A DNA stretch of 64,000 nt from Cyanophora paradoxa CCMP329 (GCA_004431415.1 QPMI01000261.1:1-64000); one strand, 5' to 3'; counted from the first letter of the stretch, positions 31,986-38,330 are shown. The notes: generated from the letters alone by a model not told the origin. Translations and numbers: made by a program.

Positions 31986-32455
31986 CCTCCGCGGCTGAGC
32001 CCGGCCCTCCATTCGCGCGATCTGCTGTAGCCAGTCAAAAGCGCTAGCTGGCTAGTTGATATCGCTTGTCCCGTCAGAATGCTCGACGTCGACTAGCCCG
32101 CCCGGCCCCGCGCCCCCGCCCCTCGCGATTGCGCTGCTCGCACCTCAAGTCACTGAGCTCGAGTGTGCATGTATAGGTATGGCGGATCGCAGATGACACG
32201 TGCGCGCATGCTGTATTACGTATACGTAGCGCACATGCACGTACAGCCCTGCGCGCGCGCGCGTTCAAGGGCCCCGGGCCCGACTCGGCGAGATCCAGAG
32301 CGGCCCTTGCAATCGCAGGAGCCGCGCCCCGATGCGCAAACGCGCTGTACATGCCCCGACAATAAATTAGCAACAATAACTGATACGCTGACTACGCTGA
32401 TCGAAACAGGGACTAGGACTAGAGGGCCCAGATCAAGAGGAGCAGAGAGGGCGGA

Positions 32456-33608
32456 CTAGTGGGCGCAGCGGCCGGGGGCGGGGAGGGCGCCCGAGGTGTG
32501 GCGGGGCCGGATGTCGGCGCGGGCGTCGGAGACGTCGACGAAGCCGGCGGCGGGGGCGACGGCGGGGAGGGCGCCCTCCTCCGACTTGCCGCCGCCCCGC
32601 GACCCCGACGCCGACATCTCCACGTCGCCGCCGTGCGTCTCCTCGTCGTGGAGGCAGTCCTCCTCGCCCACCCGCCCGCACCGCAGGATCCCCAGAACGG
32701 GGTACACCCGCTTCATGATCACTGCGCGCGCCGCGGCTCAGCCCTCGAGGCGGGGGCGTCCGCGCGAGGGCCCCGGCGGCGCGCGCGTGCGCGGGCACAC
32801 CGGCGTGCCCGACGATCGTGCCGGCGATGATGGCTAGGAAGAGCCCCACGTTGAAGGTCATCGCGATGAGCCTGGCAATGGAGAGCCGGTCAGCCGCCGA
32901 ATTCGAAGCTTGATCATGATTGTTTCGTTGTACTAAATCGTGCTGTCTGGTTCAACGGCTTCTATCTCCCTATTGCGGGCAAGCGCATCTGACATCGATA
33001 CGCACATGACCATCAAATCGATTCCGACGTGGCAGCCGTGAAGGACGGAACAGGCACAGAGCGTTAGACAGCTGCAGCCCTTAGCACACGAGCGCTCAAT
33101 CTGCCGCTTGTAGGCGCCTGTGGAGAATCAGCGTACAATCATACACAGAGCTGTGGTCTCCCAGGAGCATACGCACCGAGCGCTTGAGCTATCACAACGA
33201 TAGAAAATGTGAACACCAGAGCGCCGAAGAAGGACGCGGAAGACTTAGTTGTGAAGCCTTTAAATAGCACGGTCACCTGTGCCAAGGTTCGGCAGGCTGC
33301 GGGGAACGGAAAGCGCATGTGCTACGCACGGAATTTGACAAGATGAACGCCGCCGCGCTGTGATCCATCGAGCTTCCTGTCGTCGTTGACATCGAGTGGT
33401 CGTGTGGGGAACTTGCATCAGTTCCGGCCGAGGTGCTCGGGGCGCCCGTGCTGCCAGCGGATGTCGTGTTGACGTGGGCGCTGGTTCCGGCCGCCGCCGA
33501 TGAGGCACTGGTTCCGCTTAACGCATCATCGTGCACTTCTCCGTTGTGTGCAAGGGCCGGGAGCGCCAGCGCGACGACGACGGCGAGGGCCACGAGCGCG
33601 AACCTCAT
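32456..33608 (-). CDS. Ctr-family copper transporter with signal peptide
   Basis: Signal peptide MRFALVALAVVVALALPALA; His/Met ectodomain (HDHSM, SMDHS); TM1 FFGALVFTFSIVVIAQ; TM2 MxxxM in LMVMLIAMTFN followed by GLFLAIIAGTIVG (GxxxG); Cys-rich loop SCAKGCSCLTLCAC. Confidence 0.88.
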
Positions 33609-33942
33609 GGCCAACTGCAAAACGTCCAAAGCCGGTTCCCCGACGCTCGCTTTCCCGACGCCGCACGCCGCGCGCGACGGGTAGCTCAGAGCCGCGCGGC
33701 GCTCAGACCGCGCTCTTCTAATGGGGGTAGGAGCTGCTTTTTTGCGTCACCAGTGTACCCCGCGGTTGTGCCTCATCATCCGTAGCTACAGTGCGCCGGG
33801 CTGCCGATCAGCCGTAGCTAGTTTCCGATCGCTCTAGCCCGTTGATTCAGCGGTAACAGGGCCCGAGCGACTTTGCGCGCGAGCGCGGATTAATACTTTC
33901 CAGCCGCGCGATGGACATGCCGATGATAGCGAGTCCTGGCGC

Positions 33943-36647
33943 ATGTGCGTATGTGCCTCAGCGCGCCCCAACCGCGCCCCTCCCCTCCCCCTCCTTTCCC
34001 CGCGCCGTGCGCATCGGCGGATCGGCGCGCCCGTGACCTCTATGGGCGTGGGCGCGCGGGTAGCCGCACCAGAGGGGTCTATAATTACCTGTTCGTCTAG
34101 TGCGCAGGGTGCATTGCTGATTTCTCCCGCACCCGCAGTCGTCGCGATACATAGCACAAGTCACTTCGAGCCGCTCGATCAACCGCTTCCTTCAGAGAGC
34201 TTTCGTCGCCCCGAACCTCCCCCAGAGACTCCATCCGCGCCATCCCCTGCGCCCGCCACACCGGCGGAGCTCAAGGTAAAGATCAAGCAGATCCACGCAG
34301 ACCCTACCATCTCAGCGCAAGAAAAAGTGCCGGTTTCCCCGCGCTCTCACGCTCACGCGCGCTGAGACTGCACCAGGCACGCAAAGTGCAGATGCTTATG
34401 GCGGGGAAGTGGATGCTCAAGAATGGTGCCTCGCCGCATGCGCCTTTCCTGAATTCTACCGTAAAGCGGATGCACGTGCGCCAGACTATTCGGGATATGA
34501 AAGCCCGGGCACGCCGACCCCAGGCGCGTTCTTTTTTTCCTTTTTCCAGCAACGTAGTTGCGGTTTTCTAGAAGCTCGGTCTGACGCAGACTGCAACGGC
34601 AGGGAGCCCGCGAAGGAGAGCGGACAGCGCGGCCTCGCAGTCGGAGGGGGCGGGGGCGGGGGCGGGGGAGGAGGAGGCGATAACGGAGGAGGAGCGGGCG
34701 GCGACGTACCACACGAGCGGCAACCTCGGGTGCTCGCACTACAGGAGGAACTGCAAGCTGCGCGCCAAGTGCTGCGGCAAGATCTTCTCCTGCCGCTTCT
34801 GCCACGGTCAGCCCGCTCTTCCTCCCCCCGCTCCCCCGCCCCGCCCGACGCGGCTGCGGGGGCCAGACGAGGCGACGGGCCACGCGATGGACCGGTGCGG
34901 GGCGGCGCCGGCCGGCCCTCCCCCCCGGGCGGCGGCCCACGGGGCGGGGCGGGGCGACAGGTACGCCACGGAGGAGATGCTGTGCATGCACTGCAAGACC
35001 CTCCAGCCCATCGCCGCCACGTGCCGCAGGTCCCGCCTCCCCCGCCCCGCCCCGCCCCCGCCTCTGCCTCACCCCGCGCCCCCCCAGCTCCAAGTGCAAG
35101 GGGAAGCAGATGGCGAAATGTGCGCGAATCCTTCCCCCCGCGCCTGCCCCTCCCTCTGACGCGGGGGGCGCTCAGACTACTGCGAGACATGTGCGCGCGG
35201 CCCCGCGCTTCCGAGGGGGGCCCGGGTGGGATGTTGCGGGGTGCTTGCTCCGGTTTCCAACCCACACATCGATCCGGGGCGGTCTCTCGCGTGGCCGCCT
35301 CGGGGGAAACGGTGGGGAGAGCGCCTCGCTGCTCCTACTATGGCCACCGCGCCTCCGATCGCGCGAGCCTCCACGCGGCGAGGAGATCCCCCGCCCCCCG
35401 CCCCCGGCCCCCTTCCCGTCTCCACTCTAGCGCTAGCGCCGCCGCGTGTTCCCCGGGCCTCGCCGGCGGGGCGGGGTGCTGAGAGGCCTCGCGGGGCAGG
35501 CAAGTTCCTGGACGACGACCCCGAGAAGGAGATCTACCACTGCGAGCACTGCAACAGCGCGCCCCGCCCCGCTCCGCCCCGCCCCGCTCGCCAGCCCCGG
35601 CTCACGCGCCCCGCCCGCGCAGTCTGCCGCATCGGGAAGGGACTCGGCATCGACTACTTCCACTGCAACAAGTGGTGCGGGCGGGGCGTGGGGCGGGGCG
35701 GGTGCGCGATGGGTCAAGGCTGAGGTGCGGGACGCAGCAACGCGTGCATGAGCACGTCACTGAGGAACCACCGCTGCGTCGAGCGCTCCCTCGAGAGCGA
35801 CTGCGCGCCCGCCCCCCGCCCTCCCAGCCGGCGGGGCGCTGAGGGCGGGGCAGGCCCGATCTGCCACCACTACATGTTCACGAGCACGACGCCGGTGATG
35901 TTCCTGGCGTGCGGGCACTGCATGCACGTCGCCTGCTTCGAGCAGTACACCATGACCAACTACGTCTGCCCCATCTGCTCAAAGTCCCTCGTCCGCCCCG
36001 CCCCGCCCCGCCGCGCGCCGCGGCGCCTCAGGCTGGTGGGGCAGGGGGACATGAGCGCGTACTTCGCGCGGCTGGACGAGCACCTCGCCCAGGAGCAGAT
36101 GCCCGACGAGTACTCCGACATGCGCAGGTCCCCCCCGCCCCCGCCCCTCCCCGCCCCGCCCCCCGCCACCACGCTCTGGCCCCGTCCCTCGTTCCCAACC
36201 CACACATCGATCCGGGGCGGTCTCTCGCGTGGCCGCCTCGGGGGAAACGGTGGGGAGAGCGCCTCGCTGCTCCTACTATGGCTACCGCGCCTCCGATCGC
36301 GCGAGCCTCCACGCGGCGAGGAGATCCCCCGACCCACGCCCCCCGCCCCGCCACTCTCTTCCCGCCTTTCCCCTCCCCCGCTCTCTTCCCGCCTCCCTCC
36401 TCCTCGGCCTCGCGGGATTGGCGGGGCGTGACGCGGGGGCGGCGGCAGCAACATCTTCTGCAGCGACTGCGAGCAGAAATCGACGGCCAAGTTCCACTTC
36501 ATGTGCGCGGGGCCGGCGCGTGGGGCGGCTCGGGGGGCGGTGGCGGGGCGCCTCAGGCGGGGCGGGCGCAGGTACCACAAGTGCGTGCACTGCGGCTCCT
36601 ACAACACCAAGGTCCTCGGCCACCTCAACGCCCGCGTTGGCTCCTGA
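33943..36647 (+). CDS. CHY zinc finger-CTCHY-RING-zinc ribbon E3 ligase (Pirh2/RCHY1-like; resembles the BRUTUS/HRZ C-terminal half)
   Basis: GCSHYRRNCKLRAKCCGKIFSCRFCH|D, YYCETCKF, YHCEHCN|ICRIGKGLGIDYFHCNKC, CPICHHYMFTS...CGHCMHVACF...CPICSKSL, FCSDC...YHKCVHCGSYNT. Start uncertain (33911-34042). Confidence 0.93.
35253..35393 (+). ncRNA. Intronic structured element, copy 1 (candidate ncRNA, cis-regulatory RNA or MITE)
   Basis: 141 nt inside the 309-nt intron 35191-35499; 139/141 identical to 36191-36331; folds into a long interrupted hairpin. The repeat is certain; RNA function is inferred. Confidence 0.55.
36191..36331 (+). ncRNA. Intronic structured element, copy 2
   Basis: 141 nt inside the 321-nt intron 36128-36448; differs from copy 1 at two positions; flanks unrelated. 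Confidence 0.55.
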
Positions 36648-36849
36648 ACCCCCGCCCCTAGCGCCTCAAGCCCCCCCGCTCCCCACCTCCCCCCTTCCCA
36701 ACTTCTCCTGTATTTACACCTCCCCGTCTCTTTTCTTCCATGCAGTAAGTTCGATTTCTCGTAGGTGGGTCTGGTATACTAATCCAGCATTAGCTGTTGC
36801 CCTGCAACGATGTATCTTGGCACTCATGATCCATGTATTAGTTTAAGCT

Positions 36850-38330
36850 ACAGCAGCCTTTTCGCTACATAGGGCAAGGTTCCAGGACGGGCCACCGGGT
36901 ATGTAGCCTAGTTTAGTGTACGTAGCCTAGTAGGTTCACACGATCGTCCAAAGGATCGATCAACCAGGCAAATCATCTCTGATCATGATCATGATCACCG
37001 CTGTGTCAGTGTTTCACTGAGTCATGTCCGTGACTTCAAGTAATGCAAGCCTTGAAAAATCACATGAGCTCGAGAATATGAATTTTCAAAAAGTTCCCGG
37101 AAACGTGCCAGGTTGCCAAGTGGGCAACTTGCCATTGCAATTGGCAGGCCGCTGACCCGCGCTGGGCCTCAAAAGTTCGAATACTCATGATCAGACTCTG
37201 AGAATGGAATCCGATCATGATCATGTTCAGTCTCTGGGGGGTGCGATGAATCGGGATCATGGAATCCGATCAGAATCCGAATCAGTATGATCATTGAATC
37301 GAACATGAACAGGTGCCTGCAGTCCGACGGTCACTGAGCCTCCGAGGGCTCGGATCCGGATCGGAGTGCCAGGACCCGGGAAACGTATACGAACTTTGAA
37401 GCCTTGAAGAGAGCCCCGGGTCGCGTGCACGTGCGGGGGCCGGACATTTATAATTACATGGCCTTTCAAAAGTGTGCCATGCCATGATGAGTGAGGATTG
37501 CCAACTGGCAATTGCAATTAGAACCGTTGAACGTTGACCGTTGCAATTGATCATGATCATGAACCTTGCAATTGTGAACCCGGCGAACCCAATTGGAACC
37601 TTGCCTTGATCATGAAGCTCAGCGCTAGCGGCTGTGACTCATTGGATCAGTCGGACGTGACCTGGTGAACTTGAGATCCGACCGTCGGACGGTCAATTCA
37701 AGTTTTCTGAACTTCGGAATAGTCTCTGGGGGGGTGCGGGGGGGCCCGGCCGCGGGGCGGAGCTGCTTGTTGGACGTGAACTTCAGTGATCATGAACCTT
37801 CGAACCGTTGCCAGCAATTGCAAGTTGAACCTTGCCAGGCTTCTAACTTAGTAAGTTGACCCGCTGGCCAGTTGGGTCAAGTTTAATTTAATTTTAAATT
37901 TGTACATGTGCATGCGCACGTGCCCTTCATGATCAGCTCTTTCATGCCCACTGCCTCCGCGACATCCACCGCGCCCTCCAGACCTATTTCCGGACCTGGT
38001 TCCCGCAACTGCCAAATTTCTGAGAAATACCGGAAATCGCCCCATCTAGGCTTCAGACGGGCCGGACGTTAGGCCCCATTTTCCCGCGCGAGAGCTGCAG
38101 CCCGCGGCCGGATAGTTTAATTCGTGCCCTAAACCATTGGTCATGAATCATTGAATCTTCGATCATCTTGTGGGCGACTCAGTGACTCGCGCGCGATCGG
38201 CGATGCGAGGGACCCACGGGCCACGACTGGCCCGGGTGAAAAAATGTTCAGCGGTGAAAAACTGCAGGTTTGGATTCCACTAGATCGGTACTAGGCATGA
38301 TCATGACATGATGGTTCAACGAACCGCTGT
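36850..38330. other. Low-GC, palindrome- and micro-repeat-rich intergenic block between convergent genes
   Basis: At least ten TGATCA, recurrent TCATGA, CAATTG and GAACC(G)TT motifs, and two copies of AGTCTCTGGGGGG(G)TGCG (37229, 37721); no credible ORF. Confidence 0.7.

Follow-up and report, generated by a model that had tools for sequence, protein, structure and literature searches.

A Predicted Two-hairpin Box H/ACA-type Guide RNA with AGA Boxes in Two Introns of a Cyanophora paradoxa E3-Ligase Gene

Introduction

Two-hairpin box H/ACA snoRNAs are known from yeast, plants, vertebrates, and Ostreococcus and are recognized by a hairpin-hinge-hairpin-tail layout of about 120–160 nt, by a bipartite pocket in each hairpin, the top of which lies about 14 nt (13–16 nt) from a box, by the sequence ANANNA in the hinge, and by a terminal ACA or one of the variants AUA, AAA, and AGA; AGA is listed among the variants of the ACA box (PMC7991803). 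In the guide RNAs of trypanosomes, AGA is the rule, at a distance of 13–16 nt from the target as compared with 14–16 nt for an H or ACA box, and the single-hairpin AGA guides are 57–91 nt long (PMC2613932); an AGA tail is the defining feature of the single-hairpin guides of trypanosomes (PMC6698659). A literature search found no paper on glaucophyte snoRNAs.

The element described here is present twice in a 64-kb stretch of DNA from the glaucophyte Cyanophora paradoxa (the window, 64,000 nucleotides), in two introns of a gene for a Pirh2/RCHY1-like E3 ligase. An initial annotation, made from the sequence alone, regarded it as an undescribed intron-encoded RNA or a splicing-control switch. The present analysis supports a structured RNA encoded on the sense strand of the introns, but its architecture corresponds to that of the two-hairpin H/ACA guide RNAs, so that the class is not an undescribed one, and the model that best accounts for the predicted structure is that each host intron probably carries one two-hairpin box H/ACA-type snoRNA.

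Results

The coordinates of the host gene, its two relevant introns, and the parts of both copies of the element are collected in Table I. Direct comparison of positions 35253–35393 and 36191–36331 confirms the duplication in the same orientation that had been noted previously: the two blocks form a direct repeat of 141 nt, identical at 139 of the 141 positions, with differences at element positions 4 (T/C) and 93 (C/T). This pair is the sole long repeat found in the window, where the 17-mer at the 5' end of the element has no third match at up to 3 mismatches, and exact-pattern scans of metagenome and viral contigs for the element gave 0 matches. The edges of the conserved block are only a few bases away from the ends predicted for the RNA.

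Table I. Positions of the host gene, the host introns, and the predicted RNA features in the window
Feature	Position	Strand	Remarks
Host gene: CHY zinc finger + RING + zinc ribbon, Pirh2/RCHY1-like E3 ligase, tig00001094_g6984	33911..36648	+	Based on open frame, domains, and exon search
Host intron A, 9th of 15	35191..35499	+	GT-AG, 309 nt; branch-like CTGAG at 35479
Host intron B, 14th of 15	36128..36448	+	GT-AG, 321 nt; branch-like GTGAC at 36428
Copy 1, predicted 137-nt H/ACA-type guide RNA	35253..35389	+	Conserved block extends to 35393
Copy 1, predicted hairpin 1	35261..35316	+	Lower stem 35261-35265/35312-35316
Copy 1, predicted hairpin 1 pocket, 7x7	35266-35272/35305-35311	+	
Copy 1, predicted hairpin 1 upper stem, 12 bp	35273-35284/35293-35304	+	8-nt loop, GU at its end
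Copy 1, hinge box AGAGCG, H-box position	35318..35323	+	13 nt below hairpin-1 upper stem
Copy 1, predicted hairpin 2	35324..35383	+	9-bp lower stem 35324-35332/35375-35383
Copy 1, predicted hairpin 2 pocket, 9x5	35333-35341/35370-35374	+	Upper stem and loop 35342-35369
Copy 1, terminal AGA, ACA position	35384..35386	+	14 nt below hairpin-2 upper stem; predicted 3' end 35389
Copy 2, predicted 137-nt guide RNA	36191..36327	+	Conserved block extends to 36331
Copy 2, predicted hairpin 1	36199..36254	+	Pocket 36204-36210/36243-36249
Copy 2, hinge box AGAGCG	36256..36261	+	
Copy 2, predicted hairpin 2	36262..36321	+	Pocket 36271-36279/36308-36312
Copy 2, terminal AGA	36322..36324	+	Predicted 3' end 36327

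When folding energies are compared with those of shuffled sequences, the sense strand gives z scores of −2.5/−2.1 and the antisense strand scores of about 0. For positions 1–137, the cut being 3 nt past the terminal AGA, the unconstrained minimum-energy fold of both copies consists of two pocket hairpins, with a probability of 0.97 for the lower stem of hairpin 1 and pockets that are 86–99% unpaired. In element numbering, the AGA boxes are at 66 and 132, the lower stem of hairpin 1 is formed by 9–13 and 60–64 and its pocket by 14–20 and 53–59, and the pocket of hairpin 2 is formed by 81–89 and 118–122. The variant at position 93 (T at 36283) provides one extra upper-stem pair in hairpin 2 of copy 2, and position 4 is outside the pockets. 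The two-hairpin fold has an energy of −69.2 kcal/mol, as compared with −52.4 kcal/mol for the end-to-end series of nested stems initially drawn by hand and −64.7 kcal/mol when only its outer stem is enforced, and the hand-drawn fold is therefore not favored. Folding of the entire 141-nt block, or of the element within its intron, gives minimum-energy structures in which pocket 1 is shut or the boxes are paired. In the free 137-nt RNA, the unpaired fraction of the hinge AGA is only about 35%. Six bases at the start of each copy (35253–35258 and 36191–36196) complement the 3' strand of pocket 1, so that this pocket can be closed as long as the RNA is untrimmed; both variants preserve this pairing. 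Given these competing pairings of the 5' end and of the boxes, formation of the active fold would depend on the RNA being trimmed and bound by protein.

Both copies, each with a predicted length of 137 nt, fold in the order hairpin, hinge, hairpin, and tail, with pocket tops 13 and 14 nt from the boxes and an AGA immediately after hairpin 2. The length, the layout, the bipartite pocket in each hairpin, the position of the boxes 13–14 nt below the upper stems, the sense-strand intronic location, and the occurrence of paralogous copies in introns of one gene are all shared with the two-hairpin H/ACA snoRNAs. The element differs from them in its hinge, AGAGCG, which contains an ANA but is without the final A of ANANNA, in a tail that has AGA in place of a strict ACA, in matching no Rfam family, and in that neither of its candidate target uridines is a known site of pseudouridylation. 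Since the fold, the spacing, and the terminal box agree with the class and the hinge does not, the element is referred to as a variant rather than a plain member. The statement in the initial annotation that H/ACA boxes are absent is thus correct for the strict consensus sequences, but two AGA boxes are present at exactly the positions of H and ACA. A detector that requires, twice, a pocket 12–15 nt above any ANA box was passed by both copies but by 0 of 2000 dinucleotide shuffles and neither of the 2 antisense strands; when the window was scanned on both strands, a single hairpin hit was obtained at 25 of 2700 ANA sites (<1%), and the only double hits were the two copies. It should be kept in mind that the detector was built, from textbook thresholds, after the element had been seen, and these figures therefore overstate the case somewhat.

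The AGA boxes also invite comparison with the guides of trypanosomes and Euglena (PMC2613932, PMC6698659), with which the element shares an AGA directly after the hairpin, the 13–16-nt rule, and the sizes of pockets and stems. It differs from these in having two hairpins joined by a 6-nt hinge within one block and in being located in a glaucophyte intron and not in a polycistronic cluster. Each copy could, in principle, represent two tandem single-hairpin AGA guides of this type, which would be separated by cleavage and would function independently; there is one AGA box per hairpin, the boxes are 66 nt apart, each half folds into a pocket hairpin when taken alone, and the sizes are within the 57–91-nt range (PMC2613932). 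However, hairpin 2 begins just 3 nt after the first AGA, without room for a processing spacer, and the linker is identical in both copies, so that separate guides appear very improbable. The H/ACA scaRNAs have the fold and the intronic origin in common with the element, but neither apical loop contains the UGAG CAB box, CGAG being present in stems only, and there is no convincing match to U1, U2, U5, or U6 of other eukaryotes.

Other classes of RNA received no support. Scans with Rfam at three scales yielded chance hits only and no family, the TPP riboswitch included, at the gathering threshold, and a motif scan bore out the reported absence of a C/D box, a TPP core, and an IRE loop and found no hammerhead core; the element has no C box RUGAUGA and no D box CUGA, an Sm site and a Pol III terminator are absent in the same type of scan, and a tRNA/tmRNA scan detected none. 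A short stretch resembles the P3/L3 core of HDV-like ribozymes, such as the intronic CPEB3 ribozyme. A descriptor for these ribozymes, consisting of the nested double pseudoknot P1-P2-P3-P1.1-P4 with the J4/2 cytosine, gave 0 hits on the sense strand of the two introns, and within the element it had no hit on the sense or the antisense strand; this candidate was rejected.

The high identity of two sequences over a short distance could reflect an error of assembly, and the contigs of a DNA run from 2024 (X14), which may itself be one of the sources of the assembly, bear on this directly. The repeat is assembled there as a single collapsed contig of 137 nt (36195–36331); other contigs run into it from both 5' flanks, ending at 35286 and 36224, and leave it into both 3' flanks, starting at 35364 and 36302. 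RNA contigs, in addition, connect copy 2 with its own flanks. The depth of the collapsed contig, 100.7, corresponds to two copies of about 59 each after merging of the variant bubble, and neighboring GC-rich contigs have depths of 51–69. In the bin 36168–36261, two contigs explain all of the depth; the bin 35228–35321 has a small excess, for which a short chance match is possible. An assembly error as the origin of the second copy is largely refuted by these DNA and RNA contigs, and its likelihood is negligible.

The same contigs are relevant to the possibility that the repeat represents a recently inserted, non-autonomous mobile element, or a local duplication that has no function. The identity of 98.6% and the sharp edges are as would be anticipated for an insertion of this kind, and a MITE had been the main alternative in the initial annotation, but only two copies are apparent, with neither a terminal inverted repeat nor a shared target-site duplication. 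The X14 assembly has one collapsed 137-nt unit with two entries, two exits, and the depth of two copies; among the pieces listed at 80% likeness there is no further long match, the next-longest of those listed being about 53 nt of low-complexity intron, and the contig graph and depth fit two copies at this level of likeness. Both copies also have the same orientation and the same offset in their introns, the element starting 62 nt (intron A) and 63 nt (intron B) downstream of the 5' splice site, and the fold is strand-specific and has H/ACA geometry. This explanation is accordingly rated as quite improbable. The flanks of the two copies, previously described as unrelated, are so on the 5' side, but on the 3' side their alignment is slightly better than that of block-shuffled controls (2–8/1000). 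The matching 5' offsets and this trace of similarity in the 3' flanks suggest that the duplication was probably one of the intron together with its RNA.

The host gene model was searched exon by exon, giving a match of 100% to C. paradoxa tig00001094_g6984.t1 and one of 89% from the glaucophyte Gloeochaete, and has one open frame across the gene. Gloeochaete was the only other glaucophyte in which a homologue was found, as a transcript that does not contain the element; two further protein searches gave either no hits or hits mainly to proteins of oomycetes and other non-glaucophytes. The sizes of the two enlarged introns are as initially reported, and 12 of the remaining 13 introns are 50–79 nt long, but the first intron (33945–34138) is also long at 194 nt, so that length alone is not peculiar to the two host introns; the detector found no H/ACA geometry in this first intron. 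It contains a TATA-like sequence, TATAAT, at 34080, and an alternative start is possible. Three of the 15 introns are of the GC-AG type (34524–34602, 35557–35622, and 35803–35853), and a micro-exon of 15 nt (35176–35190), the joint of which is confirmed by an RNA contig, directly precedes intron A. A Ctr copper-transporter-like gene is located at approximately 32450–33630 on the minus strand, head to head with the E3-ligase gene and with about 300 nt between the start codons; its assignment is weak (Pfam Ctr E 6e-4, below the cut-off), and its N terminus contains His/Met. On the other side, the intergenic region 36900–37900 has many short palindromes (TGATCA, CAATTG, ATCGAT, TCATGA) and in this respect differs from the surrounding GC-rich genes.

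In three probable RNA runs, from three studies, mRNA contigs skip both host introns. The public model tig00001094_g6984.t1 (P0001, 498 amino acids) translates parts of both introns, including part of the element, as protein, although these contigs show both introns to be spliced out. Each of the three runs also has a separate contig over intron B and copy 2 (to 36474, 36459, and 36423), and none of them has an unspliced contig for intron A. Because the strand and the ends of an RNA are not evident from contigs, and weak branches can be lost in assembly, these data establish only that intron B occurs unspliced. The unspliced RNA is the sole pointer, among the tests made, to the cis-acting switch proposed in the initial annotation, in which alternative folds of the pre-mRNA would control the splicing of the E3-ligase introns. 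Such a switch would be in keeping with alternative folds that lie within about 5 kcal/mol, with the stop at 36429 that retention of intron B would introduce, retention of intron A leaving the frame open, and with the copper-transporter-like gene upstream. Nevertheless, it leaves unexplained why each of the two pockets lies at the H/ACA distance from an AGA box; intron A contains the same element, yet has no unspliced contig; and the branch motif of intron B, GTGAC, is weaker than the CTGAC, CTCAC, or CTGAG of most introns of the gene. Furthermore, the distance of the element from the 5' splice site exceeds 60 nt, its distance from the branch motif is about 90–100 nt, and known aptamer cores are absent. 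Copy-to-copy pairing is possible in silico, and no exon-skipping joints are listed in the RNA runs. In human cells, transcripts that retain H/ACA-bearing introns are known (10.1101/2021.01.21.427585), and a switch is therefore not needed to account for unspliced RNA over intron B; it is considered improbable.

Candidate targets of the predicted guide RNA were sought in 1198 conserved uridine contexts of eukaryotic rDNA loci from metagenomes, none of them from Cyanophora, with 12 high-GC loci left out. In the rRNA of these other eukaryotes, the candidate for pocket 1 is U2868 of the large subunit (yeast numbering), in the peptidyl-transferase region, with 3 + 6 or 3 + 7 Watson-Crick pairs: the 5' strand of the pocket is an exact 7-nt complement of a conserved peptidyl-transferase stretch, and 3 pairs are formed on the other side. 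In yeast, position 2868 is situated between pseudouridine 2865 and m5C2870. For pocket 2, the candidate is U1442 of the yeast large subunit, between Cm1437 and Am1449, with 3 + 7 pairs including one G-U. Shuffled pockets equal these matches to non-Cyanophora rRNA with p values of 0.08–0.17 for each and 0.03–0.04 jointly, or 0.13–0.25 with looser registers. Neither U2868 nor U1442 is listed as a pseudouridine for Arabidopsis, human, or yeast, or in the corresponding rows for Euglena and Leishmania, in which the position next to U1442 (yeast 1443) is modified. As the matches are weak relative to shuffles and the sites are not listed pseudouridines, an rRNA target is suggested rather than demonstrated, and the proposal that at least one of the two candidate pairs (pocket 1 with U2868 and pocket 2 with U1442) is right is put forward tentatively, as a possibility somewhat short of an even expectation.

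Two other placements on rRNA were considered. With pocket 1 on the conserved pseudouridine at yeast 966, the 3' strand complements the preceding bases but the 5' strand is unpaired, and this site, which was not a hit in the scan, was rejected; a 6 + 3 match seven bases before yeast U960 requires an rRNA variant that is present in 5 of the loci. Nothing convincing as a target was found among the U1, U2, U5, U6, 5S, 5.8S, and SRP RNAs of other eukaryotes, the U2 sequences scored being only from loci in marine-invertebrate symbiont assemblies. Bacterial assemblies from such symbionts (L120, L127, L132, L134, and L149) contain eukaryotic U2-U1-5S tandem repeats, which are host contamination, and in L134 the genes for U1, U2, U5, U6, and SRP RNA are within 2.1 kb.

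Discussion

If the element is a two-hairpin H/ACA-type guide RNA, as its predicted structure suggests, the established H/ACA pathway indicates how it would be made and act. The guide RNA would be transcribed within the E3-ligase pre-mRNA, Cbf5, Nop10, Nhp2, and Gar1 would bind at the two AGA boxes, and trimming of the spliced intron would release an RNA of about 137 nt. The pockets of this RNA would then pair on both sides of a uridine in a stable RNA, for which large-subunit rRNA is the most likely candidate, and the uridine would be converted to pseudouridine. The most likely origin of the second copy is an old duplication, within the gene, of the intron or its snoRNA, after which selection and/or gene conversion may have kept the RNA nearly identical as the flanks drifted. 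A more specific proposal is that a guide with two AGA boxes, bridging the H/ACA and trypanosome forms, installs pseudouridine at U2868 and that its assembly may slow the splicing of the host intron; we consider this combination unlikely.

Without a new pseudouridine, the locus would represent another intronic snoRNA pair with a layout that is familiar from plants, algae, and animals. If pocket 1 does direct the modification of U2868, two bases before m5C2870, the catalytic center of the ribosome would gain a new site of pseudouridylation. A guide RNA with AGA at both boxes would extend the known box variation that is tolerated by the Cbf5 complex, and the AGA-boxed element illustrates why Rfam and consensus searches overlook such RNAs.
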